Sequence record: MW812339.1
DNA: 64,000 nucleotides
Direction: 5' to 3' (one strand)
The translations under genes were made by a program, and so were the position numbers. Numbering within the stretch: position 1 is the stretch's first letter; each line of letters opens with the position of its first letter. Under the pieces are notes generated by a model. The model worked only from the letters and a program-made list of their open reading frames with translations. It was not told the DNA's origin and did not search any database. Of this stretch, positions 34,385 to 54,373 are shown piece after piece.

Positions 34385-34452
34385 AGGCGAATTCCTCTAA
34401 AGGTACAGGTCATAGTATGAACTCGACGACCCTCGGAGAAAAGGAGTATAAA

Positions 34453-37400: not shown

Positions 37401-38169
37401 AGAATCGATTATGGCAGGCTGGCACGACGACACGAACTTCTTCAACCGTCTTTCTATTATCCTGAACCGCGGCTATAACATCACTGACACAAACGGTGAT
37501 TTCTGTTATGCCGGTTTTGCGTTGAACTACGGTCGCGGACGTAACGTGGTGATTGGTTTTACCGGAACGAAACTGCCTGTGGGTGGTGGCGCTGCCTGGT
37601 CTGCCCTGAATCCACGCGTGTACTGGTATCAATCGCGCAATGCGACAGGCATCACCATTACTGGTTACCTGATCCTTGGCGGCCTGTATTACGACTTCAC
37701 GTTAACCCTCAGCACAACAGAAATGACCTTAAAGGTCACGACGCGCGCGACCGGTGACGTACAGACGGTTGATTTGTCGAGTCGTATCCGTCCGGACTAC
37801 ATCGATATTCGTCCGCTCATCAACAATCCAGAGTTGCCTATTTATCATGGCTTCGGTGGGATGTTTGGCGACGTGACAACGGTGGCTCCGACGTATAGCC
37901 GCGATGCCAGCATGGTCAAGAATAGGTATTACGCCACGTTCTTAGATTACATGATTAACTACTCCGCTCTCAACCGCGTTCGGTTTGCAGAGTACAATTG
38001 GGTGGGTGGTTCTGTCACCCCTGAATCGTTGGCTGACTCTATTGTCAATGCCATCGGTTCAGAAGGTGCTTTGGTCGACCCAAACAAAGTACCGCTGTAT
38101 GCCAACGCCGACAACGTGATTGCGTTCAATCGCGGAGGCATTGCTCGCGCGGTGATTATTCGCGATTAA
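34453..38169 (+). CDS. Large tail-fibre-like virion protein 1
   Basis: About 1240 aa; start after AAGGAG; DNPH, KTSYGLDQVQDIPDTQLLIS, GHSH motifs shared with neighbours. Confidence 0.75.
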   Translation: MAVVPDPHFNQPGNKQTGEAVTPIGTKYRMLFPVHAPFFTTSLVVKSGGKTLKLGDDYVITHPYMVGMSRTGYLTHGAVWITNDKYTNNFTMDYHAVGIAEATASQIAAEREANKDKYPTAIECQWDAVVGDVYFPPVDIQFDWENWRGELELMQAIAAIGTKIGQLPPIPDPYIGNRFAPAFPADIMMSGSRQYVNYDNQGGYVAKNNGQAIVYLSSNDYLLFNFKVDTEYNLSSYASNVNAKQFWSMPLGYLGTSSGVQNVGISWDSTSLVMRFAITIAGVEYPVASFPAPKSFMAKFRVRFDRNYDLDTLRCVVTGADGSTKIDTVFDFRNPPSNLVAIFAQYNVLKAVHRGVDFRNSWYVVRGDTWKHNVFPGMAVPDGSDVLTLLKHYHSIVDALYRNAPAHAHIPRVDNPHRDIWGAIRALEQGGIASDATLVYGKNQSQLADYVNTQLPKLADLANKLLRMPAAPQAINGTFGTKPGLTSVTSAVGTDESNGVGAQFTVDAKVIRFLGRDSTTVNAGNNAITFQSGANQLILYPDSRGLLFNGKKLLDPTTVAPYLPGNEGGGDGLFYGTSTATVTINGNGIQSVPFICQFVPPTSDDLGLLVMRKLATDFGTAEDLAATPALIAKLDAMFTGKLVKAKSYVNDLPLTGSIYLDKTSYGLDQVQDIPDTQLLISTLQQAELDKYAVVGHSHQASAFGIDTATDVQFGLVKYSLAVDDATLALDGGEVIRQTTSVTEIEGVAKSLDSGAAIDIIRFGPPGTGTIEGGATFTGWMLTIKAGTYFVGQEYTVPLTTINLTEAFPGAYEDVEMGIYVDVQDNAAVYRIFANKDTAETDTMTAVGIVGTSEDEIVMAEVHSVTRLGDFRELEEHIADDNAHIKRTMTQAEFGFTYGTGGPVWRSGIMDNTRGEGDWRGALADGYYPMGAVQYDDANGRWTFRPNGTSVNDYRFIHNLFPMYLNQGVTANWLSSDTGNASMLESIMAGWHDDTNFFNRLSIILNRGYNITDTNGDFCYAGFALNYGRGRNVVIGFTGTKLPVGGGAAWSALNPRVYWYQSRNATGITITGYLILGGLYYDFTLTLSTTEMTLKVTTRATGDVQTVDLSSRIRPDYIDIRPLINNPELPIYHGFGGMFGDVTTVAPTYSRDASMVKNRYYATFLDYMINYSALNRVRFAEYNWVGGSVTPESLADSIVNAIGSEGALVDPNKVPLYANADNVIAFNRGGIARAVIIRD

Positions 38170-38181
38170 GGAGAACTCTGA

Positions 38182-41100: not shown

Positions 41101-42363
41101 ATTCGCATTACCAGTGACCTGAAAGTCTATTACGGCTACATCAACAACATCTCGAACACGACACCGGGCTTCACTTTTGGTGTTCCAACGCAGACGTTCA
41201 AAGAGTTGGTAGTCACACCAACTGTACTCTCTGATACGACACTTCCTACGGGCGATGCGCTGGACTTTGTGGACTTGGGTACCAACGGGAAACCGGGATT
41301 CCTGAGCACCCGTTGGGCGGTTCGCTATCGTTACAACTGCAACACTCGCGTACTGCGTCTTTCTATTATCTCCAGCAAAATCGGGACTAATACTCTACGG
41401 GCTCTGGAGGTGGAAATTCCATTCGCGATTGACCTGTTGGACTACTTCGCCGGTTTCGGTATGGCGGTCCATATGGGTGCAGTTGATGCCAACGAACGTA
41501 TCCGCGTGAGTCATGCACTGATGAACCCAGGTGGCGCTGTCGACGTTGACAAGTACCAATACCTGCGTTCGTTGTTGGAGTCGTACACTGACTGGTCAAT
41601 GGAAACCGAGCGTACTGGGTTTGAGAGTTATGTTGCGACTTCGGCATTGCCGAATGCCAGCGGCGATAATCTCGATTACCCGGTAACGGAATGGGTTGCT
41701 TTGCCGGTAGGTCAGGACGGGAATGCGGAATTATCTCACCGTGGACAGTTGCCATTACCGTTCCACTCCGCGTTAGCTGAACGTGGAACGTTGATTGCTA
41801 AGCAGTCTACGTTGCCCGCAGGCTACCAGTGGAACGGTGCGTGGGATAGCACCAAGATGAAGCGACGTTCGATTTGGCGTGATGGACTAATCCTCTGTTA
41901 TCGCCAGGATAAGAATGCCCCGATTGCCATTAAAGAAATCAGCGGCACGATTACCTCGAACTACCCAGGGTTGATTATCATCGGTTCTAACGCAGTGACG
42001 GCCAATAACCGCACCACGTTCCTGGCGGCAACGTCAGCGACGGATGCGAAGACTGTTAATCTGCAACCGACGAACCTCAAACCTGGCCAATCTGTCTTCA
42101 TCGCGTTGAATGCTCCGGATGCGATTGGGGCAACTGGGCTGAACGTTAAGTTCAATCTGGTGCTCAAAGACCATGCCGGGACAGTAGTGAAAACATTAAC
42201 CGAAGCCGACGCTGGTTGGGAATTGCGCTCTAACGGTGGTATCCATCTGATGGAGAAACGCACCCCATTCCACATCACTTCGGCGGCCTGGCAATGGCTG
42301 TCGTCTGAGTTAGTACGGGAACGTACCAATGATGGCAACGGCGTGGGTGAGTGGGCCTCTTAG
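38182..42363 (+). CDS. Large tail-fibre-like virion protein 2
   Basis: 1393 aa; YPYDPRGINP start, KNPH, KADLGLANANNTADVDKPLS, GHHH motifs. Confidence 0.8.
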   Translation: MKTYPYDPRGINPECHFTEERIIESDDPKDRVVMLDHRPFFDSLVVTLAGSSIPLTRGTDYELEYALTPLDDSVASAVFCGVHLINPKLRGAVIFDGQMLGGTFYDGLIEMLDELVKALNNPTSADWLLLDNRPALYPATPSATSWADMLNKKYIASAVHDVELDSDAANDAIREKLTELKVQVTSLATEMDAFNFPAHTGAKNPHNTTVAQTNAHPVNLKTPDTFLAYGKNLRQLTSEIRALGLQQSDIDKYISKWVSKDSKGVFNATISGTRAMFRSPNGESDITFATDSFVMKSNGSIVLATGYVPGDTTTRFMEWKAGTNTLRIESSGTVLGMDKLTLNGTTLLTTTALMQYQQDPNQGSGGQTDPDDNKLYIQGQNGISFSGKGSKADPVTGTVTPSKATTTTVGVVKLKKGPGPETTGVASTPDSLTQYEGDLSSYVLKATLLNNKAMDDGSRTMTKADLGLANANNTADVDKPLSDDLSEAVTGLSAKGHHHDWSELQIPDASQTTQGIARYSNNQAGLAAGRGVTPNVLKALSDRLDVVAAALANAKDGTVTDFAAVKNSSWTVSAAKTSLSVTDLKYFFLSNNERKDGSVSGSIDLQTTPMFQWFSQDNRMEDSWNAAVVNTGAGVVWDNIGRPAPFAFQGSQIGVNATQMGDLSVVSVLAKVRVHSVSDKLSIYVAGGGRITVYVDGQQVTSGTSPLFVDVPMTTGWDEHCVAIKAECNDSTKAAALMFDIYDDIYPLYSSGTHTKVALLQEFVTTPKNLRHYLYVNMRTDALYSRAEPILEPSQMNVERGYIGYVDVPATGLTAGATITFDTTFDFGPAKEISAHVDVRKAHGVKSSDWKLSDNLKMLPLNKVKASMQQWGFAQAGSGASGGHVYRPDRGLSDYYFSSTGTTTIETLTVFGNKQASPYCWFTPYNPKENGQPTFEGSFTIDVENPTPMVDKGRVWGLMLLAKANGTTAPHRQIRITSDLKVYYGYINNISNTTPGFTFGVPTQTFKELVVTPTVLSDTTLPTGDALDFVDLGTNGKPGFLSTRWAVRYRYNCNTRVLRLSIISSKIGTNTLRALEVEIPFAIDLLDYFAGFGMAVHMGAVDANERIRVSHALMNPGGAVDVDKYQYLRSLLESYTDWSMETERTGFESYVATSALPNASGDNLDYPVTEWVALPVGQDGNAELSHRGQLPLPFHSALAERGTLIAKQSTLPAGYQWNGAWDSTKMKRRSIWRDGLILCYRQDKNAPIAIKEISGTITSNYPGLIIIGSNAVTANNRTTFLAATSATDAKTVNLQPTNLKPGQSVFIALNAPDAIGATGLNVKFNLVLKDHAGTVVKTLTEADAGWELRSNGGIHLMEKRTPFHITSAAWQWLSSELVRERTNDGNGVGEWAS

Positions 42364-42400
42364 GACGGACTGTCTACGGACAGGTTACGTCCGTAGGTAA

Positions 42401-42441
42401 ACCGCCCTTTCCTTCGGGGGAGGGCGGTCTCCGTTTTATTT
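42401..42441 (+). terminator. Terminator-like hairpin between fibre genes 2 and 3
   Basis: ACCGCCCT...TTCG...AGGGCGGT followed by CTCCGTTTTATTT; a second hairpin CTACGGAC/GTCCGTAG lies just upstream. Confidence 0.55.
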
Positions 42442-42460
42442 CTGATTAGGAGTGTTTGCA

Positions 42461-45400
42461 ATGCCGAGAGAAGACGCGGCGCAGTTTAACGGGAAACTAA
42501 GTACCGCCACCTACCCAAACAAATACTCAACGGTGATTCCCGTTGAGGCACCCTTTTACCGTATCGGTTTAACCTTAACCGTTACTGACCCTGTAACCAA
42601 AGTTAAACGTAAGCTGATTGAGGGCCTGGATTATTTCCTCGCTTTCTACTTTAAGGAATTAGCCGAAGCCGAAGATGACCAAATCTACGGCGGGATTATG
42701 TTGCTGAATGCCACTGATATCGAGTACGAGCTGCTCGCGGTAGGTCGTCAGTATCGCATCCCGGCTTCCGAAATCGGCAAGTATTTGGTGAAGACCGACA
42801 ACAAAGACCCGCGGAACGTTGACTGGTCAGAGTTGATGAAGTACCCGCCTATCATTGCGCCTATCGATCCGCCGAAAGATTTAGAAGAAGCGATTCTGCG
42901 TGATGAAATCGTTAAAGCATTGGATGATATCCGTCAGGGTATTGTTGCGCGCGCGGGTGAACTCGATGAAGCCTTTACCGAAGTTACCAATCTTATTTTT
43001 GAGAACGGTAAGCGAGTCTTCGATGAAGAGATGTATCAGCACCACCTCATCAAAAACGCCCACAACTACACCTGTGCCGATATCGGTGCATTGCCGGTAC
43101 TGGGCAAAGCGGTAGATGCAACGAAGGCATTCGGCCGTACACTGGCTGAGCTGGTGAACCTGATGTCATCCAGCGGCATTCAACAGCAGCATATCGACAC
43201 ATTGTTGGATAATACGCTGGGCGACCTACTGGGCCGGATGCGTGTTCTGAATAATGATGCTATCACTTTCCAGACATCAGTTGGCCACGTCATCACGATG
43301 AAAGGTGAGAAGTTCATCATTACTTCTCCAAAACCACTGACCCTGAAAGCCGACCAGGATAATAATGAACCTGGCCTGGCCACGGAATTCGGTGCAGGCT
43401 TAAACACCCTGTATGTCCACTCCGGTAAGAAAGGGGACAAGTGGGGCGATTATGGGATGGAAGTTTTAGCGCCAGTGTTCAATGGCGTGTTCCTGGTAAC
43501 GCCGGATATGGTCGGGTTGTATTTGACTTCGGTGAAACTGCTTCCAGCCAACGCCTATTTCAAGTCCAGCGACACTCTGAAGATTTACGGTTCAGGGAAA
43601 GAGACCAACAAAGTCTACATGAACGCGGAGTTGCCTGGTGCGACCACCGCAGTAGAAGGTCTGCTGGCCATTACCAACCTGTCCGCATCGGTAGCATCGT
43701 CCACTGCCATTTCGCAGAAAGCAGTTACCGATTTAAAGAACCTGCTCGACAACTACGTCGACGATTCCTACACCATCAACGGAAAACGTTTCGTTGCTGA
43801 CGGTAATGGGAATATGGTTCTGACTTTAACGAAGACCGATTTTGGCATCGATAAGATGGACAATACGGCTCCGTTAGCCAAGCCGGTGACAAAGGCCCTG
43901 AGTACAGTATTAGCCGGAAAGGCCCTGAGTGACCACACGCACACCATCGGCGACCTTGATAACGTACCGTATGGCTCAACCTCTGTTACGGGCCTGGTGA
44001 AGCTCTGGGACGTCCTGGACACCACGAATGATAAACTGGCCACAGCACGCTTAGGTTTTGTGCTAGACCAGAAAATCGACGTGCTAAGCGACAAGATTAA
44101 TACGCTGTTGCCCGCATGGACAGTTGGTGGTGCTTCTTACGGTAATGATAGCTTCCTGCCGATTCCCGCACTGGGTAATTACGAAGGCTACACTAAGAAC
44201 CAGACTTACCAGAAAGGGATGGTGCGTTACCAAAATGGTAAACTCTATTCTCTGCGTAACGGTTCGAACGGCGTGCCTCCAGGCGACTGGGGTATCTACT
44301 ACGCGTATATGGACGTGGCGTCTGATGCTACGCTCAGCAATGTACAGCAGACGTCGGTACGCTATCACCCAGCGGGAATGAGTAAGTTCCCTGGCGTAAA
44401 ATTGCAGGCCATCCTTATCACCGGTCGTGATGCGATCGTGTGTTTAGGCGACGACGGTAAACGTTATCTGGTGTTGTTCAACGGCACTATTGACCACGCA
44501 AAACACACGCAGGTCTGTGAGGTCACGGTTCCCGATTATCAGAACGGTAACGGCACCGCGGTCACCACCAATCCATTCGCACCAACGCCAGAAATGGACG
44601 ATTTGGTCATCAGCGGTTCTAACGTGTATCTGCTGCGTAACACGTTCAATAACTCGTCCTACTATGTTGCGGCGTGGTCTCTGCGTATTGCGGATGTGGC
44701 GAGTAATACCGCGGTGGCTTTTAACCGGGTGACGTTGAATGGTGAAGGTGGGATGTCGGGTGATAACCTGATTATCCGTAATGGTCAAAAAACAGATGCG
44801 ACTCAGACAGGTCAGTTCTTCTCGGCTATCAATGCGGCAGGGATTGTGAAGTGGAATAACGCGCGAAACTTTGTACATGGGCCAGAAGCCTCACACATGG
44901 TGTTTGCGAAGGAAGGGGTGATTCGTGTTAACCACGTTGCGACGGTTTGGTTTGCTTCCTCAACGGGTGCAACCATTAACTTCCAACTGTGGCAAACCAG
45001 TTACCTGTTAGATACCACCACGAACAAAGTCACCCTGGAATGTCCTACCCGTTTCCCAATCACGGCTGACGACGTCAGCGTTAAATACGCCGACGGTTCG
45101 GCCATCGGGGAAGCGAGTGCGAAGTGGGGTGGTGGCTCGGCGAACCGGAGAACGTACGGTGCGGTGATGGAAGACTTCGTCATCTCGCAGACGAATAACG
45201 GTGATCCTGATCTGATGCCGGAAATCTACATCGCTTCGGCGAAAGGTGCAGACCCGTTCGACTTCTTGCGCTATGATTACAAAGTGAATAACACCTACGC
45301 AGGCATCACACTTAACCAAGGACGTGGTTCGGTCTACGAAAGTGGACTTAACTTCCCGTTGTCGTTGGGTGGGAACTCCCCGCTGTTGTGGTTGTCTAGC

Positions 45401-47629
45401 CCACGTGGGCGTTTAGCGATTGAAGTCGAAGTTGACCCGAACGGCACGTATGGCGTACCGGGCTATGGTGGTTTCGGTCCGACCAACAACCGACGCGTTG
45501 TCGATTCCGGTGTTTACGAACAACTGAGTCAGATGGCAATGATTATCACGCCTACCCAAAGCGGCGGGGTATTGAACGGTTGGCAGTCGACAGGCCCTGA
45601 AACTTTCCCGTACAAGAACGTTGCTAATACCTTCTCCATTGCGACTGACCGCTACACGCTGTCTACGACCGACTGGAACAAGATGAAGCAGATGATTATC
45701 GATAACGCGCCAACTGGTGCGGCTAACGGCTACGCGTCTGAATATATCTTGGCGGCTAACAACGCAGGTAAAGCGCTGTTCTCGCTGTGGTTCCTTGGTA
45801 TCGGTACTCCGCAGCAGCTCTGTATCGCACAGGTTGCCTGTACTAAAGTAGTGAACAACGCAAACATTCTCGATATTTATTACTTCGTGATGCAGCCAAC
45901 GTTCACCGCCACCAACGTGACGTTCCCAAGCGTGAGTCTGTTACTGCTGGATTTCTTCAATAACCTGGACTATGGTCTCGACCATGCCTCGCTTGGGGAA
46001 ATCACCGGCGGGAAAACGAAACGCGTAGGCCAACCGTTGCTCGTGACCAATGACGGTATCAACTTTGGCCTGTCCTTGCCGTACACGTTGACCATTCGTC
46101 AGATCGGTGACTTGGGTGCCTTGAACTACATGGCGTCCTTGAAGTTGTCTTCTGGTACATGGTCGAAAGTGGCGGGTAAATCCGCAGTACGTAGAATGGC
46201 ACCAGCCCACCACCCAGAAAGTCCGGTCTATATCGGTCAGACAAAACAGGTGGTTAAAGTCTTTGTGAAGGCTGATGCTGTATTCTGCTCGGGGGAAGCC
46301 TATTCGACAGCGTCGTTCGTTACAGATCCAGCAATGCCCGCAGCCGGTACTCCCGTTATCTTGGCTGGGGTTCAAACGGCAGAGGGTTGGATTCTGTATC
46401 TGACCGAACAGGTAGGTCTGGACTTCGGTTCTTCTAAGTACACGGTCCCTACGTGGGAAGCCGATTTAGAAGCCATGTTCCCAGACAATCACGCCAACCA
46501 AACTTTCTATCTCCACGCACGTGTAGACAACGACACACCGTCTTACGTCCTGGATACCACGCAGCATCCTGACTCGGCGAACGAATTGTTCGTGGGGGTT
46601 GTGAAGACTGACAGTAATCGCATCGTTGAGATTAACGTCGATCGTGTTAAGCGCCTGGGTAATGTGAAACAGGTACTGGAGCACGCCGCGGTTGCGTATC
46701 GTCACGATATGGATGTGGCGCGAGATAGCAAGCTTGGTACGCTGGCACCTCTCCGCAAAGAGGCAATCGGCGCACTTAACGGTTCTGGTGATGGTTATCT
46801 GGACAGTCAGCAAACCTATGGCGTGGTAATGGCGCAAAAGCGTCCGAAGAAAAATGTGTCCTACCGCTTTTCCGATTTGGCGAAGATGAAGTTCTCAGAT
46901 TTCTCGAACGTGGCGGAACGCTTCTGGATACAGTCCCCGAAAGTAACGACGGTGTTGCCTGCAGAACACGCGGCGGCGGCTGCTCGAAACATGTCGTGGA
47001 TTGGCGCGAATGCGGGGGGTGTGGACTCGGCTGGAGGCTATCAGGCGATGACCCGTGTACGCTTCACGGTACCGGGTACGGATGACGGGTCGACGAAGAT
47101 GGTTTATCTGGCGATTGGCGTACCGAAATCGACCATTGAGTTCATGTACAGCCTGACCACCGATGACGATTCGACGCTCACGACCTTCAGCCCGAGCGAT
47201 GATTCGTTGTTCCAGATGAGCACCGCGTTACCGTCAGGTAAACCCGCAGTGCTGACTATCCTCACTACGTTCGAAGACGCCGTGTATTCAGCGATGTTGA
47301 ATAAATTCATCACCTTCGAATTGCGTGCGGATGACCAAAACGGTGCGTTGTTGCGTAGCAGTGATGCCAACTGTCCGTTCCAGATATTCAATGTCATGGA
47401 AACGACCCTGGGCTCCGGCTTCGTGACCAGAGCGATCGAACGTTCTTTCGGGAACTCTACGTTGCTGCTGAACAAAACGGTGACCACGGGGCAGGATGCG
47501 TTCCAACCGCCTACACAGGGCCTGAAATCAGGAAGCACCTTTACCCTCACAGTCGCAACGGAATATGGCAGTGAACACGGTATCGTGGAGCTGGATGACC
47601 TGCAGGTCAATCTTATGTTCCGTACCTAA
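42461..47629 (+). CDS. Large tail-fibre-like virion protein 3
   Basis: About 1720 aa; ATG 42461 spaced from AGGAG; KNAH, KTDFGIDKMDNTAPLAKPVT, DHTH motifs. Confidence 0.8.
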   Translation: MPREDAAQFNGKLSTATYPNKYSTVIPVEAPFYRIGLTLTVTDPVTKVKRKLIEGLDYFLAFYFKELAEAEDDQIYGGIMLLNATDIEYELLAVGRQYRIPASEIGKYLVKTDNKDPRNVDWSELMKYPPIIAPIDPPKDLEEAILRDEIVKALDDIRQGIVARAGELDEAFTEVTNLIFENGKRVFDEEMYQHHLIKNAHNYTCADIGALPVLGKAVDATKAFGRTLAELVNLMSSSGIQQQHIDTLLDNTLGDLLGRMRVLNNDAITFQTSVGHVITMKGEKFIITSPKPLTLKADQDNNEPGLATEFGAGLNTLYVHSGKKGDKWGDYGMEVLAPVFNGVFLVTPDMVGLYLTSVKLLPANAYFKSSDTLKIYGSGKETNKVYMNAELPGATTAVEGLLAITNLSASVASSTAISQKAVTDLKNLLDNYVDDSYTINGKRFVADGNGNMVLTLTKTDFGIDKMDNTAPLAKPVTKALSTVLAGKALSDHTHTIGDLDNVPYGSTSVTGLVKLWDVLDTTNDKLATARLGFVLDQKIDVLSDKINTLLPAWTVGGASYGNDSFLPIPALGNYEGYTKNQTYQKGMVRYQNGKLYSLRNGSNGVPPGDWGIYYAYMDVASDATLSNVQQTSVRYHPAGMSKFPGVKLQAILITGRDAIVCLGDDGKRYLVLFNGTIDHAKHTQVCEVTVPDYQNGNGTAVTTNPFAPTPEMDDLVISGSNVYLLRNTFNNSSYYVAAWSLRIADVASNTAVAFNRVTLNGEGGMSGDNLIIRNGQKTDATQTGQFFSAINAAGIVKWNNARNFVHGPEASHMVFAKEGVIRVNHVATVWFASSTGATINFQLWQTSYLLDTTTNKVTLECPTRFPITADDVSVKYADGSAIGEASAKWGGGSANRRTYGAVMEDFVISQTNNGDPDLMPEIYIASAKGADPFDFLRYDYKVNNTYAGITLNQGRGSVYESGLNFPLSLGGNSPLLWLSSPRGRLAIEVEVDPNGTYGVPGYGGFGPTNNRRVVDSGVYEQLSQMAMIITPTQSGGVLNGWQSTGPETFPYKNVANTFSIATDRYTLSTTDWNKMKQMIIDNAPTGAANGYASEYILAANNAGKALFSLWFLGIGTPQQLCIAQVACTKVVNNANILDIYYFVMQPTFTATNVTFPSVSLLLLDFFNNLDYGLDHASLGEITGGKTKRVGQPLLVTNDGINFGLSLPYTLTIRQIGDLGALNYMASLKLSSGTWSKVAGKSAVRRMAPAHHPESPVYIGQTKQVVKVFVKADAVFCSGEAYSTASFVTDPAMPAAGTPVILAGVQTAEGWILYLTEQVGLDFGSSKYTVPTWEADLEAMFPDNHANQTFYLHARVDNDTPSYVLDTTQHPDSANELFVGVVKTDSNRIVEINVDRVKRLGNVKQVLEHAAVAYRHDMDVARDSKLGTLAPLRKEAIGALNGSGDGYLDSQQTYGVVMAQKRPKKNVSYRFSDLAKMKFSDFSNVAERFWIQSPKVTTVLPAEHAAAAARNMSWIGANAGGVDSAGGYQAMTRVRFTVPGTDDGSTKMVYLAIGVPKSTIEFMYSLTTDDDSTLTTFSPSDDSLFQMSTALPSGKPAVLTILTTFEDAVYSAMLNKFITFELRADDQNGALLRSSDANCPFQIFNVMETTLGSGFVTRAIERSFGNSTLLLNKTVTTGQDAFQPPTQGLKSGSTFTLTVATEYGSEHGIVELDDLQVNLMFRT

Positions 47630-47676
47630 CACATAGCGCTATGGGGCACGGAAGCCCCAATCTAAGGAGTTTGGCG

Positions 47677-48879
47677 ATGGCCGAAATTACTATTCAGTAC
47701 CCGTTAGACCTAACCGGTACACTGACGTCGAACGCCGTAACCCGGCGTGTCACGTTGGGGTCAGGTAAGGTTAACCGGGCATTTGCTTTCCCTGTCGGAG
47801 CGTTCTACGCGGATACCTTCCGCTTAGCAGCTTCGAATAAGCCGGGCGTCTATCCGTATAAACGCGGTGTCGACTACGAGCTTATCCTTGCGCACACTGC
47901 GTACCAGAAGATGACGAAGAACCGTGAAGTGGTAATGGGGGTCGTGGTAACGAACTCTGCCATCCCAACGGATATTGAAGTCTTTGCGCAGATTGTTGGT
48001 GGTCCACAGGCGGCAAACGTCGAAGGTATCCGTCAGCTGATTGCGTCACTGAAAATTGAAGACCGCACCGTCGACTTCAAAGATTTGCGCAATGTGCCGG
48101 ATACGTTCCCTGCGGCCCCGACCTATAAAGACCTTGGTGACATTTACGGTTTTGAATACATCATTACCGTGCTCTCCGGGATTATGGATGCCATCAACTC
48201 TGGCTCAGCGGTACAACTGGAACAGATTAAAGGTATCCTCGACGGATTGAAGAATGACTTCATGTCTGCCCTGAATGCGCACATCAATGCCGAAGGCAAC
48301 GTGCACAATCTGGACATTCATCAGGCCAACGGTTTAACCGAAACCGAAATCCGTGCGCTGATTCAAGGTGTACAGACTGCCATTGATGCCACGATTACGG
48401 ACATCAATAATCTGAAAGCAGCAGACACTGCTATAAATGGACGTATCGATGCGATTGTGGCCTCTTTGGCCGCGTGGAACGATCAGCTGAACTCGGTCGC
48501 GCAGAACTATCAGAAAGCGATGTTGGCTCTGGCTAACCTGAACTCTCTGGTGCTGCAGCTGCAGAAGCAAGTCAACGACATGCAATCTGCGCTTAACGAA
48601 ACGAACCAGCGCGTCGATGACCTGGAGAATCAGGGCAAAGACTTCCAACAGCAAATTGATGCCCTGAACACGCGAGTGACTAACTTGCAGACGCAGGTCA
48701 CGAACAACACCAATGCGATTTCCCAGGCGAACCAGAATTTGGCGAACCACGTCGCTGCGGATAACCCGCACCCGAACTATCTGCACAAGCGGTATGGTGG
48801 GGTGGTTCAGGCCGCTGTCCACGTCAACGCATCGCTCACGACGCGTGACGACGTACAGGCAGAAGCCGGTACTAAGTAA
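47677..48879 (+). CDS. Virion fibre-like protein with trimeric coiled coil
   Basis: YPLDLTG N-terminus shared with the family, about 100-aa Asn/Gln heptad coiled coil, C-terminal HVAADNPHPNYL...YGG fibre motif; start after AAGGAG. Confidence 0.75.
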   Translation: MAEITIQYPLDLTGTLTSNAVTRRVTLGSGKVNRAFAFPVGAFYADTFRLAASNKPGVYPYKRGVDYELILAHTAYQKMTKNREVVMGVVVTNSAIPTDIEVFAQIVGGPQAANVEGIRQLIASLKIEDRTVDFKDLRNVPDTFPAAPTYKDLGDIYGFEYIITVLSGIMDAINSGSAVQLEQIKGILDGLKNDFMSALNAHINAEGNVHNLDIHQANGLTETEIRALIQGVQTAIDATITDINNLKAADTAINGRIDAIVASLAAWNDQLNSVAQNYQKAMLALANLNSLVLQLQKQVNDMQSALNETNQRVDDLENQGKDFQQQIDALNTRVTNLQTQVTNNTNAISQANQNLANHVAADNPHPNYLHKRYGGVVQAAVHVNASLTTRDDVQAEAGTK

Positions 48880-48947: not shown

Positions 48948-49340
48948 ATGGCGATTTCTATCAAAGATATTCGTAACCGCTTGCAAGTCGTAGAAGCAAA
49001 TGTGGCAACGGGCCCACGTGTCGACGCTCAAGTCGCCACTAAAGCCTATAACGCCGCAGATAAATTTGCAGGATGGACGCCAGCGCAGCTCGATTGTGGA
49101 GGCACCTGTTCGTGGACATGTTCTAATGGCTGCTCGCACGGCTGTTCGAGCTGTTCCGGTTCCTGTTCGTCTTCTTGTATCGGTAGCTGTTCATCGACTT
49201 GTGGTGGTAACTGTTCTGGTTGCTCTGGTTGCTCCGGTGGGTGCAGTTCTTCGTGCACGGGTAACTGTTCCGGCGGCTGCGGTGGTTCCTGTTCATCTAA
49301 CTGCTCAGGGGCTTGCTCCGGCGGCTGCTCTGGACGCTAG
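48948..49340 (+). CDS. CXXX-repeat precursor-like peptide A (49-aa leader plus 81-aa core with 21 Cys)
   Basis: Core CGGT-CSWT-CSNG-CSHG-CSS-...-CSGR; AAGGAAG RBS; beside radical SAM genes. Confidence 0.85.
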   Translation: MAISIKDIRNRLQVVEANVATGPRVDAQVATKAYNAADKFAGWTPAQLDCGGTCSWTCSNGCSHGCSSCSGSCSSSCIGSCSSTCGGNCSGCSGCSGGCSSSCTGNCSGGCGGSCSSNCSGACSGGCSGR

Positions 49341-49349
49341 GGGGAATAA

Positions 49350-49751
49350 ATGGCAATTGGATTAAAAGAACTCAACTCCAGATTGGTTGCGGTAGACCAG
49401 GTTGCGTTCAAAACAACAACTGCGGTTCAAGCCTACATTCGGCCTAAGGCAACCAACAACTCTGATTTGTTTGGCGGTCAACCGCGTGCTCACTACGACT
49501 GCGGCGGGACGTGTTCGTTTAGCTGCTCAAGTTGTTCTGGGGGTTGTACGGGGTCAGCATCAGGCGGGTGTGGTTCAACGTGTTCAGCGAACTGCGTCTC
49601 TGGCTGTTCAACAGGCTGCTCAGGTTGTAGTTCGACGTGTTCTGGTGGTTGCTCAGGTGGTTGCTCAGGTAACTGCTCTAGTGGCTGCGGTGGGTCTTGC
49701 TCTTCCAACTGTTCTGGTTCGTGTTCAGGCGGATGCTCCGGCCCTATGTAA
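49350..49751 (+). CDS. CXXX-repeat precursor-like peptide B (50-aa leader plus 83-aa core with 20 Cys)
   Basis: Core CGGT-CSFS-CSS-CSGG-CTGS-ASGG-...-CSGPM; leader homologous to A. Confidence 0.85.
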   Translation: MAIGLKELNSRLVAVDQVAFKTTTAVQAYIRPKATNNSDLFGGQPRAHYDCGGTCSFSCSSCSGGCTGSASGGCGSTCSANCVSGCSTGCSGCSSTCSGGCSGGCSGNCSSGCGGSCSSNCSGSCSGGCSGPM

Positions 49752-49763
49752 TGGAGGTTACTC

Positions 49764-49970
49764 ATGATCAGTCTCAAAAACATTCGAGACCGTCTTGTTG
49801 CCGCCGAGAAGTACACTACTACTGCACAAGCAAATAGTTATATTGCTAACCAGGGGACGGTGTCTACCACTAACAACCTGGCGTCTTTACCTTTGTCCCA
49901 CTATAACTGTAACGGTGGGTGTAGTTGGTCGTGTAGCGGTAGCTGTAGTCACGGTGCAGGCAATCGATAA
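49764..49970 (+). CDS. Short CXXX precursor-like peptide C (48-aa leader plus 4 Cys)
   Basis: Core CNGG-CSWS-CSGS-CSHG-AGNR; GGAGG RBS; leader homologous to A and B. Confidence 0.8.
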   Translation: MISLKNIRDRLVAAEKYTTTAQANSYIANQGTVSTTNNLASLPLSHYNCNGGCSWSCSGSCSHGAGNR

Positions 49971-49997: not shown

Positions 49998-50885
49998 ATG
50001 AAGAACGATTTGCATCTTGCGTACAAAACCACTTTCAACCACCCACTTCATCTGTCTTCACCTGACTCAGTTCGAGCACACCTCGCAGACCAGGTTCGTC
50101 TTATTGCACAGATTCCCGGCGAGTGGCCGAAAGTGCGCGGGCGTTTTCTGACTAACCCGAATAACTACACTGTTGAAAATACGTTTAAGATCCGTGATAT
50201 GGAAGCCCACAACATCACTATCTTTAACGGTGACGGTAATTCGCGTGGCGTGTTGGTCGGCGGGAAATATTTCTTCAGTGAAGGGATTCTGAACAACAGT
50301 GTCGATTTGGAACTGATGTTCACTCCGTTTGATGAACTGGACTGTAAGCCGGTGGCTCGTCGTTGGTGGAGTCCGGACTACCTCGGGTCCTTCCCTTACT
50401 ACTTCGCGTTGGTCCCTGTTGAAACAGAAAATTATTTCGACACTGAGCCGTACATCGAAATCGAAGGGTATAAAGACCTGGACATTAACTGCTTAGCGGA
50501 CATGATGGCGTACAGCTACAAGTTCGTGTGGGATAAACGTCGCTCCGTCTGGTATGCATTAACTGACGCGCACGAAATCACCAAGCGTATCCGTAAACCG
50601 TGGATGCAGCATTTGGTGCAGACGCGTCACGGCGATTACCCGGCAACTGAAGCCGACTTAAGTAAGCTGGTAAGTTTCCTGCTGACGAAAGTTGAGCTGT
50701 CCGACGAAGAAGCGGAAGCAGTGTCCGAAATCCGTGCCCGTGCGGTGACTCTGGAAGACTTGAAACGTCTGAACGAACGTCAGTACGATTTGAATAAAAT
50801 TCTGGCTGCCTATCACTCGCCTATGCTGCTTGTGCCGGGGGCTAACGTAAACGACGATCCTTTATTCGCTATTGATTATATTTAA
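49998..50885 (+). CDS. Hypothetical protein within radical SAM cluster
   Basis: ATG at 49998 (MKNDLHL) spaced from GGAG; no recognised motif. Confidence 0.8.
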   Translation: MKNDLHLAYKTTFNHPLHLSSPDSVRAHLADQVRLIAQIPGEWPKVRGRFLTNPNNYTVENTFKIRDMEAHNITIFNGDGNSRGVLVGGKYFFSEGILNNSVDLELMFTPFDELDCKPVARRWWSPDYLGSFPYYFALVPVETENYFDTEPYIEIEGYKDLDINCLADMMAYSYKFVWDKRRSVWYALTDAHEITKRIRKPWMQHLVQTRHGDYPATEADLSKLVSFLLTKVELSDEEAEAVSEIRARAVTLEDLKRLNERQYDLNKILAAYHSPMLLVPGANVNDDPLFAIDYI

Positions 50886-50905: not shown

Positions 50906-51823
50906 ATGACAGACAAAGTAGAATCCAGGATCTCGTCTGAACTGTATGATAATCCGACAATCCTGTCGGTTGTCACAACTTCTAAGTGTAACTTAGATTG
51001 TAGCTTCTGTGGAGGAGCCTATTACATGGATCGCGAGGATACTTCTCGTGAATTTCAACGTAGCCAGATTATGGAGCAGTTAGAACAGAATCCTGGCATT
51101 CAAGAAATTCACTGGACGGGCGGTGAGCCTTTACTGGCACAGCGTAAAATCGAAGATTTCTTTTTCGAGCTTAAAGAAACCCACCCGCACCTCAAGCATC
51201 AGATGTACACCAACGGCTTAAAGATGCGTAAGTCGCACTTGCCGATGCTGAAACAGTTCGACGTAATTTTCGTGTCTATCGACGGCTACAAAAAGTCTGA
51301 ACGTCCGTTCATGAACTTTATTGACGGCGGTAACCACGAAGCGTTGGAAACGCTGTATGAGCTGGACAACTATTACAGTTGGGGTGTCATGACCCGTGAC
51401 CAGCTTGGTGACAAGCGTTGGTACGAGGACTTCATCGAGTTGCATCGTGCGCTGTATCACTACCGCCCAGGCGGGGTGTCGCTGCTGTTTGATGCGATGA
51501 TGCCTAAACCGCTCTCGCCAGACCACGTCATGAACTTTATGTATGGATACTGGAAGATTCTGGATAATATCGAACGCCTGAATATGCAGAATGGCACGGA
51601 GTGTGGCTTGGCTATCAGCAAAATGTTTGATACCGAGTGTAACATCTGCAGCGAAGTGTTGTGGCTAAACGCCGACGGCGCTATCGAGCAAAACCAAAAT
51701 GCTCCTGAGATTGTGAGTGTGGGTTGTAACCGTCTGGCTCGTTCTATCGGGGTAGAAGCGTACAACTACATCAATCGTGTCATTTCTGCTAAACGTCATC
51801 GGGCGGCTAATAATGAGCAATAA
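50906..51823 (+). CDS. Radical SAM protein with short C-terminal Cys segment
   Basis: CNLDCSFC (CX3CX2C), WTGGEPLL, YTNG, VSIDG; C-terminal CNIC and two further Cys. Confidence 0.9.
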   Translation: MTDKVESRISSELYDNPTILSVVTTSKCNLDCSFCGGAYYMDREDTSREFQRSQIMEQLEQNPGIQEIHWTGGEPLLAQRKIEDFFFELKETHPHLKHQMYTNGLKMRKSHLPMLKQFDVIFVSIDGYKKSERPFMNFIDGGNHEALETLYELDNYYSWGVMTRDQLGDKRWYEDFIELHRALYHYRPGGVSLLFDAMMPKPLSPDHVMNFMYGYWKILDNIERLNMQNGTECGLAISKMFDTECNICSEVLWLNADGAIEQNQNAPEIVSVGCNRLARSIGVEAYNYINRVISAKRHRAANNEQ

Positions 51824-53141
51824 TCAACCAATACAGTACACCCCACGTACCTATCAGGTCGTGACCAACCTGTCGTGCAACCTCGACTGCGAATATTGCT
51901 ACGAGCGTAAATACCCACGTAACAACAAAGCGGCGGATGTTATCGACTTTATCCATGCGTGTTTCGAGCGTGATAAAGATATCGAAAACGTGGAAGTCAT
52001 CATCGACATCATCGGTGGTGAGCCGTTCATGCAGCCGAAGCTGCTGATTGCCGCTTTCGAAACGGCGGAAGAGTTGTGTAAGATTCACAACCGTCCGTAT
52101 ATGTTCAGTATCTCGACTAACGGTACGCTGTTAGACCGTGCGCTGAACAAAGAAATCGTTGAGCGTTGGAAAGACAAACTGTCTATCGGCGTATCCATCG
52201 ATGGCCTGCCGGAAGTTCACGACAAATACCGCATCTTTACCACCACCCGTGAAGGCTCTTACGAGCAAGCGGTTCGTGGCTACAATTACCTGAAAGAAGT
52301 GGGTATTGCTGAACTGGGCGTGAAAGCAACCTTTACCATCGACACGCTGCCGCACTACGCCGCAAGTATGAAGTCGCTGATTGACATGTCTGGCGGTGGT
52401 ACCATCTCTGGTAACGTGACGTACGAAGACGTCCTGCCGCGTTCTATGGCGCTGGACATTGCTGCGCAGATGATGGACGTGATGGACTACTGGGTTGAGA
52501 AAGGCCTCCACACCAACCCACGTAACATCATTACCCACATCATTCCAGACGGCCTGGATTTCATGGAAATCTGGAACCCGGACTGGCGTGACAAACTGCT
52601 GCACGATGACACGGTGCGTTTGAACCCAGACCGCCTGCGTCCTTATTGCGGCACGTTAACTCACATGACCTGCCTGGGCTTCGACCGTAAGATTTACGGT
52701 TGTAACCGCTTCATGTCAACGGTAACGTCGCGCTCTGCGGTGTCTGAATTGGTTGGTCGCGAGTTCGTTAGTCTGGACGGCGGTGCACTGCTGGAAGAAA
52801 TCCAGACCCAGTACACCAACTACCCGGAAACCTGCCTGGGCTGCCCAATGAAACACAGTTGTGGTAGCTGCGCCGCTGCTTCTTACGAGAACGGCGAAGG
52901 GACACTGGAAGACCGTAAAGCGTATCACGCTGAACGTCGTCAGTGTGGCTGGACCACCGCGAAGCTGATGGCCGCGGAATATTGGTTCCAGAAAATGGGC
53001 AGTACCAAAGGCTCTGACTTCCACGATAAGTCAGTCTGTTATTGTGCTCGCTGCGTACGTCAACGCAAAGAAGCAAATATATTACAACAATCCGGAGTTC
53101 AGAATGAAGTCAATACTGATTCACAATTTTACGAAGCGTAA
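51813..53141 (+). CDS. Radical SAM/SPASM peptide maturase, CXXX-repeat target-like (TIGR04115-like)
   Basis: CNLDCEYC, IIGGEPF, ISTNGTLL, SIDGLPEVHDKYR; SPASM region YCG..C..IYGCNRF and CLGCPMKHSCGSC (CX2CX5CX2C), then QCGW..AEYWF; start MSNNQP at 51813. Confidence 0.88.
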   Translation: MSNNQPIQYTPRTYQVVTNLSCNLDCEYCYERKYPRNNKAADVIDFIHACFERDKDIENVEVIIDIIGGEPFMQPKLLIAAFETAEELCKIHNRPYMFSISTNGTLLDRALNKEIVERWKDKLSIGVSIDGLPEVHDKYRIFTTTREGSYEQAVRGYNYLKEVGIAELGVKATFTIDTLPHYAASMKSLIDMSGGGTISGNVTYEDVLPRSMALDIAAQMMDVMDYWVEKGLHTNPRNIITHIIPDGLDFMEIWNPDWRDKLLHDDTVRLNPDRLRPYCGTLTHMTCLGFDRKIYGCNRFMSTVTSRSAVSELVGREFVSLDGGALLEEIQTQYTNYPETCLGCPMKHSCGSCAAASYENGEGTLEDRKAYHAERRQCGWTTAKLMAAEYWFQKMGSTKGSDFHDKSVCYCARCVRQRKEANILQQSGVQNEVNTDSQFYEA

Positions 53142-53670
53142 GATGCATTTGGTTGACCGTTTCTTGCGTAAGAAGAAACTGTTCAACGTGCACGCTATCG
53201 TGTCCGGTGAAGACTTCACGGACGAGATTCACAGCCTGCTGATTAAGTACGGCTTGAATGTTATCATCCCTGTCAACTGTGTTGAGAAGGGACATGAATC
53301 AGTAGCGGAAATCGAGAAGCGCAACCCTGGCTTCGAAGCCCGTGTGTTGGCGTATCCGCGCCACAAAATCGAACTGCTTCGCCGTTCAGATATGGAAGGC
53401 AGTCCGGAGAGTATTATTGCGTTGGGGATGTCCTTCCCACGGTTGCGTATTCGTAACCTACGTAATACCACCCCGGTAGATTCCTACTACGCGGAACGTC
53501 AAATCTTCGAAGAACATCTGCTACCGCAGCTGGAACAAGAAGAGCAACACGACATTTCCGTACTGTGGGGTGACGACCTCGATCAGAGCTTCCAAATGCT
53601 GGACTTCGGTTTACTATTTGAACTTGGCCTGATTGAGGAGGACGAATGTCTACTGCTGGCAAAAGCCTAA
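53104..53670 (+). CDS. Hypothetical protein within radical SAM cluster
   Basis: ATG at 53104 after GGAG, overlapping SPASM gene end. Confidence 0.7.
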   Translation: MKSILIHNFTKRKMHLVDRFLRKKKLFNVHAIVSGEDFTDEIHSLLIKYGLNVIIPVNCVEKGHESVAEIEKRNPGFEARVLAYPRHKIELLRRSDMEGSPESIIALGMSFPRLRIRNLRNTTPVDSYYAERQIFEEHLLPQLEQEEQHDISVLWGDDLDQSFQMLDFGLLFELGLIEEDECLLLAKA

Positions 53671-54317
53671 CGAACGACGAAATTCGCGCACGTTACTTCC
53701 AACGCGATTTGCCGATTGACCGCCATGGTAATTTCATGGAACGTATTGGTGCACAAGACCAGGGCCGGACAGGCTTCTGTGCTCTGCTCCATTACCACCT
53801 GATTGAAGGGCTGTCCGACAAAGCGGCGTTAGAACGCATGAAGGCGTATGAGATGTCTACCATCGAAGCCAACTTCACGCTGAAACGTGCGAAAGAGTTT
53901 ATCTCTGACGTGCTGGAAATTGACCTGGACACGATGCGTACCAACATCAAGTCGACAGCGCGTTACATCTACGATGACGTGCAGAAGATGTTGTTGGAGG
54001 TGGATCGTCGTTACGAGAATGATCGTCATGCGTATATCGAATACGATGGCCATCACTATCAAGCCGATGAAGCATCACGCACCGCGCTCGGCCAGTACAT
54101 CCAGGCGAATCACGCCCCGGACTACTGGTTAGATACCCTTAACACGCAAATCGCACCGTTCTCAATTGAGCAGTGCCAGGCGTTGTTAGCGGCTATCATG
54201 AAGCGTGACCAGGACATGCACACAACGCTCGCTGAAACGAAACGTAAGATTCGTGTTCTGGCAGAGGCTCGCGACTTTACAGGCCTGAAAGCGTTGCAAG
54301 AAGAACTGGGCATGTAA
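53646..54317 (+). CDS. DUF4376 domain protein (tail-fibre-associated) with unknown N-terminal domain
   Basis: IEYDGHHYQADEASR...WLDTLNT...EQCQALLAAI...Q...KRKI pattern. Confidence 0.7.
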   Translation: MSTAGKSLTNDEIRARYFQRDLPIDRHGNFMERIGAQDQGRTGFCALLHYHLIEGLSDKAALERMKAYEMSTIEANFTLKRAKEFISDVLEIDLDTMRTNIKSTARYIYDDVQKMLLEVDRRYENDRHAYIEYDGHHYQADEASRTALGQYIQANHAPDYWLDTLNTQIAPFSIEQCQALLAAIMKRDQDMHTTLAETKRKIRVLAEARDFTGLKALQEELGM

Positions 54318-54321
54318 GCAC

Positions 54322-54373
54322 GAAAAATAAGAAAGTACCTCTCTACCCTAGGGTAGAGAGGCCTTTATTTTTT
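54322..54373. terminator. Bidirectional intrinsic terminator closing the radical SAM operon
   Basis: Perfect palindrome CCTCTCTACCCTAGGGTAGAGAGG (54338..54361) with A/T tracts. Confidence 0.85.

Follow-up and report, generated by a model that had tools for sequence, protein, structure and literature searches.

The window analysed here, 64,000 nucleotides in length, comes from the Erwinia jumbo phage pEa_SNUABM_29 (MW812339.1), a relative of Salmonella phage SPN3US, and contains a block of nine genes on a single strand, separated by spacers of 9-20 nt or overlapping, among which lie three Cys-rich proteins that we call A, B, and C. Three giant fibre-like paralogues (34417-47629) precede the block; the SPN3US gp168 paralogue has been described as a tail protein (PMC5105663). 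The gp167-like gene that follows (47641..48879, plus strand; phrog_2163, E 2e-102) encodes a 412 AA coiled-coil protein, adjoins A upstream, and is annotated in relatives as a virion structural or viral fibre protein. Downstream of A, B, and C, and also on the plus strand, are an accessory gp165-like protein of 295 AA (49998..50885; phrog_8030, E 2.7e-145), a short radical-SAM enzyme of 305 AA homologous to SPN3US gp164 (50906..51823; PF04055, E 1.4e-14), a SPASM radical-SAM enzyme homologous to SPN3US gp163 (51813..53141; 442 AA from the annotated ATG), a conserved phrog_7988 protein with an uncertain start (53044..53670), and a DUF4376-type protein (53646..54317; phrog_8169) that weakly resembles tail and tail-fibre families and closes the plus-strand gene run. 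Virion fibre and tail genes flank the A/B/C module on both sides, and the block ends at a strong, bidirectional terminator-like hairpin (54338..54361). A promoter and terminator scan found no attenuator between C and the enzyme genes.

Protein A (48948..49340, plus strand; phrog_6085, E 4.7e-42) is 130 AA long with 21 Cys, and consists of an N-terminal helix, a fibre-shaft motif, and an entry motif (L-D-C-G-G-T-C-S-W-T-C-S; 49089..49124, plus strand) leading into a ladder of C-[ST]-G-x units, with an N-terminal part of 49 AA. Its 20 gaps between Cys residues are all 2 or 3 (33332333332233333333) and include three CX2 units. Protein B (49350..49751, plus strand; phrog_6085, E 2.3e-42), with 133 AA and 20 Cys, shares this architecture and has the entry motif Y-D-C-G-G-T-C-S-F-S-C-S (49494..49529, plus strand); 18 of its 19 gaps are 2 or 3 (3323733332333333333, with two CX2 units), and the remaining gap of 7 is a unit in which Ala replaces Cys with the register preserved. 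Protein C (49764..49970, plus strand; phrog_6085, E 8.4e-24) has 68 AA and 4 Cys, comprising the N-terminal part and an entry motif (Y-N-C-N-G-G-C-S-W-S-C-S; 49902..49937, plus strand) with gaps of 333 and an Ala at the fifth register position (Ala-Gly-Asn-Arg). An earlier note on this DNA had described a common entry pattern, [LY][DN]-C-[GN]-G-[TG]-C-S-[WF]-[TS]-C-S, the CX3 register with three CX2 units in A and two in B, the register-keeping Ala unit of B, the end of C after four units with Ala in the fifth position, and the near-identical five-unit C-terminal tails of A and B, and our analysis recovered each of these features.

In all three proteins the fibre-shaft motif, N-x-x-x-[LF]-x-G-x5-[YL]-x, is short and follows an N-terminal amphipathic helix, and a Shine-Dalgarno-like sequence precedes each gene. 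For either the A or the B core, none of 200,000 shuffles that preserved composition came near the observed Cys periodicity, the best shuffle reaching 15 of 20 gaps of 2-3. In GenBank, A and B are missing or lie on the wrong strand; neither is in the protein databases, and the exact A sequence is not in a collection of 15 billion proteins. AlphaFold2 gave a low-confidence model of A (pLDDT 43) in which the N-terminal helices alone were modelled and the unmodified core was predicted to be unstructured (pLDDT 31-48). The β-solenoid raised as a possibility in the earlier note thus found no evidence, and the predicted model of A neither backs such a structure nor speaks against its forming once the protein is modified or oligomerised.

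We compared 19 related phage loci, drawn from five genera and, in six cases, from metagenomic contigs. The gene order (gp167-like, A, B, C, gp165-like, short radical-SAM, SPASM radical-SAM, phrog_7988, DUF4376) was kept in all 19, and A had exactly 21 Cys in every one, with the C-x-G-x-C-S-W entry motif retained. Among 17 distinct orthologues of A, the first 11 Cys columns were invariant with TGT and TGC alternating, as were G3, S6, W7, S10, and G12 of the core. The aromatic entry position was W in every A and C and W or F in B, with F limited to the SPN3US-type B and Y in one distant B. Variation was found in the C-terminal third, where CX2 versus CX3 spacing differed by phage genus, and in the Ala unit of B, which was Cys in Derbicusvirus and Wellingtonvirus, whose B proteins have 21 or 23 Cys. 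Four Cys in C were limited to Seoul-, Machina-, and Erskinevirus; in Derbicusvirus and Wellingtonvirus the C core kept just the pair of Cys in the entry motif, Ser and Ala standing at other register positions, and in one metagenomic relative C terminated directly after C-x-x-C-S-W. Across the C alignment, C49, G51, C53, S54, and W55 were invariant and later Cys had become Ser or Ala in other genera, so that what is conserved in C is the N-terminal part and the entry motif and not the four Cys units. The invariant Cys columns despite TGT/TGC change and the constant 21 Cys of A bear out the earlier proposal that Cys spacing is under selection and indicate a register under purifying selection. 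Both the Cys register and the aromatic position are kept in the relatives, and therefore the loss of either from homologous cores, which the earlier note had named as the outcome that would speak against it, did not arise. Co-variation of the A and B tails within genomes, as from gene conversion or matched partners, was also considered and set aside as weak, with identities of 0.72 within genomes versus 0.65 between genera in low-complexity sequence.

The SPASM enzyme contains the CX3CX2C motif (C22/C26/C29 in the alignment) and eight invariant C-terminal Cys (C279, C287, C297, C341, C344, C350, C353, and C378), and so has both the CX3CX2C and the C-terminal 7-Cys SPASM motif by which the class is recognised; JGI names its homologues 'radical SAM protein with 4Fe4S-binding SPASM domain'. 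Its best NCBIfam scores were 118.8 bits for TIGR04115 (cut-off 350) and 111.6 bits for PapB (NF047865, cut-off 340), both below threshold, and eight members of its clade scored 113-166 bits on TIGR04115. Since TIGR04115 is the best or second-best family and yet falls below its cut-off, we regard the SPASM enzyme as belonging to a related but separate clade, which by sequence appears nearest to the thioether-forming PapB, TIGR04115, and CteB. The closest solved relative was CteB (5wgg, E 5.7e-11), with anSME also among the solved relatives. The distance from the PapB and TIGR04115 cut-offs means that their chemistry is not confidently transferable to this enzyme. The radical-SAM core begins at about residue 20, leaving no room for an N-terminal RRE, and no RRE domain was detected in either radical-SAM enzyme or the gp165-like protein using NCBIfam, together with fold comparison for the latter. 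Three-residue cyclophane (triceptide) systems use an aromatic-x-x motif as crosslink site, and a candidate W-[ST]-[CS] is conserved here; the maturase families of those systems (YhhB, FxsB, GrrM, and AmcB) scored 47-62 bits, far below cut-offs of 310-445.

In the short radical-SAM enzyme, C28/C32/C35 (CX3CX2C) and C245/C248/C274 are conserved in the alignment, and the protein probably carries one auxiliary, twitch-like cluster; its weak solved relatives were viperin-like proteins, SkfB, and anSME. The gp165-like protein travels with the module in distant phages, with homologues in the loci L038, L039, and L041, and L039 also has a phrog_7988 homologue after its SPASM enzyme. AlphaFold2 produced a confident model of the gp165-like protein (pLDDT 86) for which no solved relative was found (Foldseek E of at least 0.07 against the PDB; VIA-align Z of at most 4.3) and no match in the ESM Atlas, nor did the sequence match Pfam or NCBIfam.

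The conserved N-terminal 46-50 residues and variable Cys-rich C-terminus of A, B, and C, encoded beside putative maturases, give the leader-core layout that the earlier note had read as that of precursors. The layout itself holds, but the precursor framing is incomplete, as the stretch immediately ahead of the first Cys corresponds to part of a tail-fibre shaft and in other phages the ladder is a C-terminal fibre domain. Both phrog_6085 and a leader HMM matched fibre-like proteins of 302-568 AA over the 15-30 residues preceding the first Cys. In a Deferribacter abyssi prophage, a 302 AA tail-fibre-like protein with H-x-H...Y-Y-T-E repeats and a weak 'Phage tail repeat like' match has the same C-terminal succession of junction, entry motif, and ladder; a GpJ-like tail-tip gene is found upstream of its gene, and genes for gp165-like, short radical-SAM, and SPASM radical-SAM proteins come after it. 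Two T4-like contigs encode fibre-like proteins of 494 and 568 AA that end likewise and carry PF27846, with the module genes after them, and a metagenomic contig with S74-type fibres has an A/B/C-like triad. Within this window, no leader-like segments were found in the giant fibre proteins or gp167. Five unrelated phage types have the block embedded among their tail-fibre genes, and each lineage examined had both the ladder proteins and the radical-SAM pair, with enzyme identities falling as low as 35%. A ladder peptide in L041 has about 13 residues before its first Cys and no C-S-W motif, and thus the fibre-like N-terminal part is not universal. By their homology to fibre proteins and their location in a tail-fibre cluster, A, B, and C appear to qualify as tail-fibre proteins. 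The accessible portion of the SPN3US virion literature contains no mention of gp163-166, and A and C are not in the annotation behind its proteomic searches. Searches of the literature turned up nothing published about SPN3US gp163-166 or TIGR04114/04115, nor about any link between radical-SAM enzymes and phage fibres.

The ladder appears from sequence to belong to the broad CXXX-repeat class of radical-SAM targets (TIGR04114/PF27846): A and B both show its defining feature, with Cys recurring every fourth residue over a long stretch, A scored 18.7 bits on TIGR04114, below the cut-off of 20, and B and C had no match. None of the three matched our local copy of Pfam, and the fibre-fused homologues carry precomputed PF27846. 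Bacterial loci with radical-SAM enzymes 27-31% identical have CXXX-repeat neighbours, including short peptides of 70-95 AA, these being the best dozen loci of a pattern scan in which the rest were ordinary SPASM enzymes at no more than 31% identity. The bacterial and phage systems share long runs of Cys at every fourth residue with small residues between them, and an adjoining SPASM enzyme without an N-terminal extension. They differ in that the phage SPASM enzymes form their own clade (113-166 bits versus 350), that a fibre-type junction and a C-x-G-x-C-S-W entry motif occur in the phage targets and not in the bacterial examples, and that the phage module adds a second radical-SAM enzyme, the gp165-like protein, and a tail-fibre cluster setting. 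The CXXX-repeat/TIGR04115 system has been defined bioinformatically, and we found no biochemical study of it in the searchable literature.

An experimental precedent from 2026 is CrpC of Methanococcus voltae, a TIGR04463 SPASM radical-SAM enzyme that installs ranthionine thioethers within C-x-x-X motifs of the 28.8-kDa Cys-rich protein CrpA (PMC13692751). As here, the substrate is a protein and not a short peptide, and there are paralogous substrates with a common N-terminal region (PMC13692751). The likeness extends to C-terminal repeated Cys motifs, to crosslinks in motifs of 4-5 residues starting at Cys, and to a three-cluster SPASM enzyme. In contrast, CrpC has an RRE and belongs to another family, on which the window enzyme scored 57.8 bits, and CrpA is archaeal, has no virus or fibre context, and carries 17-residue repeats with C-x-x-Q/D instead of a 4-residue ladder. 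The systems of PapB (freyrasin) and CteB (thermocellin) supply the nearest curated family and the nearest solved structure, respectively, but the phage enzyme falls below the PapB cut-off and the products of PapB and CteB are small released peptides. PapB closes a single small ring in each of its repeated C-x3-D units, and such a series of rings is the model we propose for the ladder, whereas the cores of A, B, and C contain no Asp or Glu that could serve as acceptors. CteB has an N-terminal RRE, of which none was detected in the phage SPASM enzyme, and the acceptor residue in the CteB substrate is Thr. Among virion proteins, the HK97 capsid offers a parallel: its isopeptide 'chainmail', formed by autocatalytic Lys-Asn crosslinks, also strengthens a virion component covalently in a cytoplasmic setting that precludes disulfides, but the scheme proposed here would rely on dedicated radical-SAM enzymes and a Cys ladder carried by fibre-type proteins.

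Based on these data, the reading we favour, and to which we would assign about half of our belief, is that A, B, and C are a thioether-stapled fibre component, being paralogous cut-down tail-fibre proteins and not free antibiotic precursors. Enzymatic crosslinking, which the earlier note had put forward, would be the most plausible purpose of the ladder given the proximity of the SPASM enzyme to thioether maturases and the CrpC precedent (PMC13692751). We infer a chemistry, a division of labour between enzymes, and a route into the virion in which the radical-SAM enzymes would convert the Cys thiols unit by unit in the reducing and anoxic-enough cytoplasm of the infected cell. Each Cys sulfur would be joined to a carbon of a residue in the same or the next unit, within the chain as for CrpC/CrpA and PapB, yielding a chain of small rings that may be rigid, protease-resistant, and indifferent to redox state. 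The modified A, B, and C would then be incorporated in, or mounted on, the baseplate fibre apparatus that the adjacent genes specify. This reading is supported by the mostly Ser or Thr residues at positions +1 and +3 of the units, by the predicted lack of an intrinsic fold in the unmodified core, by a module order kept in 19 loci with 21 Cys in A despite varying codons, by the ladder ending full-length fibre-like proteins ahead of the same module genes in other phages, and by an SPASM enzyme nearest to PapB, TIGR04115, and CteB with a full SPASM Cys set. It is weakened by the lack of PapB-type Asp/Glu acceptors, by the 9 of 576 units that are C-G-G-G and so have no side-chain carbon at all, and by the short-leader ladder peptide of L041 that lacks C-S-W.

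A broader proposal, which we offer tentatively and lean somewhat against, is that a portable module of ladder domain, new-fold accessory protein, and two radical-SAM enzymes, shared by several unrelated lineages of tailed phages, staples a fibre tip or appendage with about 20 thioether rings per chain, making this the first radical-SAM-matured virion structural protein, and that in SPN3US-like jumbo phages the domain has been split off into A, B, and the stub C, which retains just the entry motif, perhaps as a fibre-like trimer or a baseplate-fibre cap.

Different radical-SAM chemistry on the same ladder, such as formation of formylglycine or dehydroalanine from Cys, epimerisation, or a Trp-centred crosslink of cyclophane or Cys-Trp type within the entry motif, with the other Cys left for metal or later disulfides, seems to us rather unlikely. 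Two distinct radical-SAM enzymes are conserved, suggesting two reactions, and C-S-W is the sole part of the core kept in every C. Some C proteins have Ser where the register would place Cys, and anSME-type enzymes, represented among the solved relatives, accept both Cys and Ser. Yet the anSME, cyclophane, and epimerase families all scored below PapB and TIGR04115 and far below their own cut-offs, and the anSME recognition motif C/S-x-P/A-x-R was found in none of A, B, or C.

We consider it unlikely that the N-terminal 46-50 residues are a cleaved leader, as in a classical RiPP, with the crosslinked core freed at lysis and bioactive, for example, against competing bacteria or phages. The leader-core layout, the several precursor paralogues followed by maturases, and the descent of the enzymes from RiPP-maturase lineages would all suit such a system, as would the 70-95 AA peptides beside bacterial radical-SAM enzymes and the short leader in L041. 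A RiPP system, however, fits poorly with a block of nine genes in which searches of Pfam, NCBIfam, and PHROGs found no leader peptidase or other protease, exporter, or immunity gene, with the failure to detect an RRE in the enzymes or accessory protein, and with a tail-fibre setting in five unrelated phage types where the domain is fused to full-length fibre-like proteins. Moreover, the N-terminal part is the best-conserved part of C, which would be odd for a discarded leader.

It is improbable, in our judgement, that the ladder is an unmodified fibre domain holding metal (Fe-S, Zn, or Cu) as thiolates or forming disulfides after lysis, with the radical-SAM enzymes acting on another substrate. 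To our knowledge, CX3 spacing with Gly/Ser fillers is not a usual pattern for a metal site, and we count this against it, together with the association of ladder and enzyme pair in all lineages examined and the recurrence of the CXXX-repeat/radical-SAM pairing in bacteria. The extreme Cys content and the absence of a predicted intrinsic fold without ligand would nevertheless agree with it, and metal binding has been suggested as one role that the related CrpA might have (PMC13692751). That A and B are not genes, the Cys pattern being a by-product of real minus-strand ORFs, can hardly be correct: the deposited record places such ORFs over both and long stretches are open on the opposite strand, but these range over 58-135 codons among relatives, as composition predicts, while the plus-strand ORFs are complete with start codons in related loci and have ribosome-binding sites in the window, Cys is invariant as its codons vary synonymously, A, B, and C match phrog_6085 strongly (E 1e-24 to 1e-42), and homologous domains terminate long plus-strand fibre genes elsewhere.

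If thioether stapling of A, B, and C is borne out, it would be an undescribed way to harden a structural part of a virus, with the rationale that covalent crosslinks are feasible in a reducing cytoplasm where disulfides are not, and 'RiPP-type' radical-SAM chemistry would reach beyond small natural products into the structural proteins of viruses. Protein C and a short C-like stub in L039 would be natural minimal substrates for CXXX-repeat/radical-SAM chemistry, and the 21-Cys count of A, fixed despite drifting spacing, is a concrete constraint. The interpretation would also give a role to four to six conserved genes that are unannotated or misannotated in SPN3US, which serves as a genetic model, and in many jumbo phages of Erwinia, Salmonella, and Cronobacter that are of interest for biocontrol.

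The sequence matches Erwinia phage pEa_SNUABM_29 (MW812339.1) at 100% identity; this 249-kb jumbo phage, a Seoulvirus, is a relative of Salmonella phage SPN3US. Its Cys-ladder genes lie in a plus-strand block downstream of three giant, consecutive, paralogous fibre-like ORFs of 1250, 1393 and 1725 aa (34417-47629) and of a gene for a coiled-coil virion protein of 412 aa. The 1725-aa product is homologous to SPN3US gp168, a tail protein resembling phiKZ gp131, which is located at the baseplate periphery (PMC5105663). The giant ORFs equal the small ladder proteins in number, and no sequence link was found between them and the N-terminal parts of those proteins. A strong bidirectional terminator-like hairpin (54338-54361, 10-11 bp stem) separates the end of this fibre/maturase block from converging minus-strand genes.

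The ladder proteins A (48948-49340; 130 aa, 21 Cys), B (49350-49751; 133 aa, 20 Cys) and C (49764-49970; 68 aa, 4 Cys) are all encoded on the plus strand, each behind a ribosome-binding site, and have Cys-to-Cys gaps of 33332333332233333333, 3323733332333333333 and 333, respectively. Re-checking the ORFs reproduced exactly the Cys register and spacing described in the earlier note: all three cores open with its entry motif, [LY][DN]-C-[GN]-G-[TG]-C-S-[WF]-[TS]-C-S, the register-preserving Cys-to-Ala unit of B is the gap of 7, C stops after four units with Ala in the next register position, and A and B have their last five units in common. The cores consist of Ser, Gly, Cys and almost nothing else, their periodicity was approached by none of 200,000 shuffles, and all three proteins matched the PHROG family phrog_6085 (E 1e-24 to 1e-42). 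AlphaFold2 gave the ladder core no intrinsic fold and modelled only the N-terminal helix with moderate confidence.

Across five genera (Seoul-, Machina-, Erskine-, Derbicus- and Wellingtonvirus) and metagenomic viral contigs, the gene order was constant: gp167-like, A, B, C, gp165-like, short radical-SAM, SPASM radical-SAM, phrog_7988 and DUF4376. A had 21 Cys in every relative collected, without exception, and a CX2 unit at its fifth gap in all of them. B had 20 Cys and the Ala unit in Seoul-, Machina- and Erskinevirus, and 21 or 23 Cys, with Cys at the Ala-unit position, in Derbicus- and Wellingtonvirus. In the C-terminal third the CX2/CX3 pattern depends on the genus; Cys count and N-terminal register are under tighter constraint than exact spacing throughout. 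The aromatic position is kept, being W in all A and C and W or F in B, so the outcome that would have refuted the earlier note's reading did not occur. For C, alignment showed only the N-terminal part and C-x-G-x-C-S-W to be invariant: Ser and Ala replace the third and fourth Seoulvirus Cys in Derbicus- and Wellingtonvirus, and one distant relative terminates directly past C-x-x-C-S-W. The Wellingtonvirus C proteins that have lost these two Cys (loci L028, L029 and L030; e.g. L028:3963-4172) carry an additional N-terminal Cys (G-T-C-N-N) 15 residues ahead of the entry motif.

More distant loci, reached through homologues of the SPASM enzyme (35-47% identity), placed the ladder on fibres. In a Deferribacter abyssi prophage, genes for a GpJ-like tail tip and two small proteins precede one for a tail-fibre-like protein of 302 aa that contains H-x-H...Y-Y-T-E repeats; next come a gp165-like gene and those of the short and SPASM radical-SAM enzymes. 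The C-terminal end of this fibre-like protein consists of a junction (N-A-D-Q-L-G-G-Q...Y-Y-R), then C-x-x-C-S-W-T-C, and finally an extended CX2-3 ladder. Two T4-like contigs encode 494- and 568-aa fibre-like proteins with the same ending and 26-28 Cys, followed by two radical-SAM genes, and their ladders bear PF27846, 'modification target Cys-rich repeat'. The junction recurs in further proteins of about 200 aa each, and a contig with S74-type fibres has an A/B/C-like triad with gp165-like, both radical-SAM and gp167-like genes. At a T7-fibre-like locus (L041), gp165-like and enzyme genes follow a ladder ORF that is missing from the gene calls, lacks C-S-W and has only a very short N-terminal stretch. 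This ORF (L041:3937-4248, plus strand) begins in another frame inside the final 88 nt of the fibre gene (L041:2291-4024), overlapping its 3' end, and may encode either a separate peptide with a short leader or, via programmed frameshift, an extension of the fibre. Both phrog_6085 and an HMM of the jumbo-phage N-terminal parts aligned to the long fibre-like proteins over a stretch that starts 15-30 residues ahead of the first Cys. Together with the distant loci, these matches indicate that the second half of the A/B/C 'leader' is a fibre-shaft segment and the ladder a C-terminal fibre domain, which jumbo phages encode as three independent mini-proteins, each with an extra helix at the N-terminus. 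We consider fibre ancestry and a structural context probable.

The 442-aa SPASM enzyme combines CX3CX2C with eight invariant Cys towards the C-terminus, and has too little N-terminal sequence for a recognition domain. Its best curated families, TIGR04115 (118.8 bits, cut-off 350) and PapB (111.6 bits, cut-off 340), both scored below cut-off, as for eight members of its clade, and among solved structures the thioether synthase CteB is its best match. It thus belongs to a sister clade of thioether-forming maturases, outside every curated equivalog. The short radical-SAM enzyme (305 aa) has three additional conserved Cys (C245, C248 and C274), which suggests one auxiliary cluster; two metagenomic SPN3US-like contigs have a second copy between A and B (L016:2563-3471 and L031:2564-3472; ~54% identical to the window's enzyme). 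The gp165-like protein has a confident predicted fold (pLDDT 86) with no match among solved structures, and its presence beside the module in all lineages makes a role in substrate handling or assembly probable.

The ladder is very probably a member of the broad class of CXXX-repeat radical-SAM targets (TIGR04114/TIGR04115, PF27846), whose definition is purely bioinformatic; our literature search turned up no biochemical study of the class and no paper dealing with the SPN3US ladder/maturase genes. Bacterial CXXX-repeat loci, with enzymes 27-31% identical to the phage's, likewise have the repeats adjoining the enzyme, in short peptides and 500-670-aa proteins that, unlike the phage ladders, lack the C-S-W entry motif. 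In Margulisiibacteriota/Termititenax (L043-L046; e.g. L043:3078-5081), 500-670-aa repeat proteins adjoin SPASM enzymes, and the helix ahead of their first Cys (L-K-A-x-H-L-E-E-[IV]-R-Q-V) loosely resembles the A/B/C helix. Two viral contigs (L033:5471-5939, L034:4069-4540) have two small CX2C-repeat ORFs ahead of the gene for a distant radical-SAM enzyme (~24% identical), and so represent another type of phage Cys-repeat peptide. Among experimental systems the nearest precedent is CrpC, which places ranthionine thioethers inside short C-x-x-X motifs of the Cys-rich 28.8-kDa protein CrpA (PMC13692751, 2026); CrpC is a SPASM radical-SAM of another family than the phage enzyme.

In the mechanism that we propose, a nearby carbon would lose a hydrogen by radical abstraction and be captured by the Cys sulfur, so that each C-[ST]-G-x unit would close into a small thioether ring, giving a rigid, redox-insensitive rod or tip carried by a fibre-type protein and assembled in the cytoplasm. 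Enzyme lineage, Ser/Thr enrichment (78% at +1, 51% at +3), the absent intrinsic fold and the fibre context argue for this proposal, while the absence of Asp/Glu acceptors and the occasional all-Gly units count against it; we put the combined claim at about even chances. A different radical-SAM reaction, for example a crosslink centred on the Trp, is unlikely. A released RiPP is slightly less likely still, and an unmodified metal or disulfide domain is improbable. That the A/B ladder is non-coding, or encoded by the other strand, is hardly credible, even though the record annotates minus-strand 'hypothetical proteins' over A and B (pEaSNUABM29_00267/00268; 49046-49258 and 49493-49816): we regard the plus-strand reading as secure because the ORFs are intact in related loci, Cys codons switch between TGT and TGC with the residue never altered, and opposite-strand open lengths vary from 58 to 135 codons between relatives.

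The SPN3US annotation includes only a truncated B, as gp166, A and/or B are uncalled in most relatives, and the exact A and B sequences had no match among 15 billion predicted proteins. Although the general CXXX-repeat/radical-SAM class is already known from databases, as far as we could find the link of this module to phage tail fibres is undescribed, as are the conserved entry motif, the fixed 21-Cys count of A, the A/B/C split with its stub protein, and the second radical-SAM enzyme and new-fold accessory protein.
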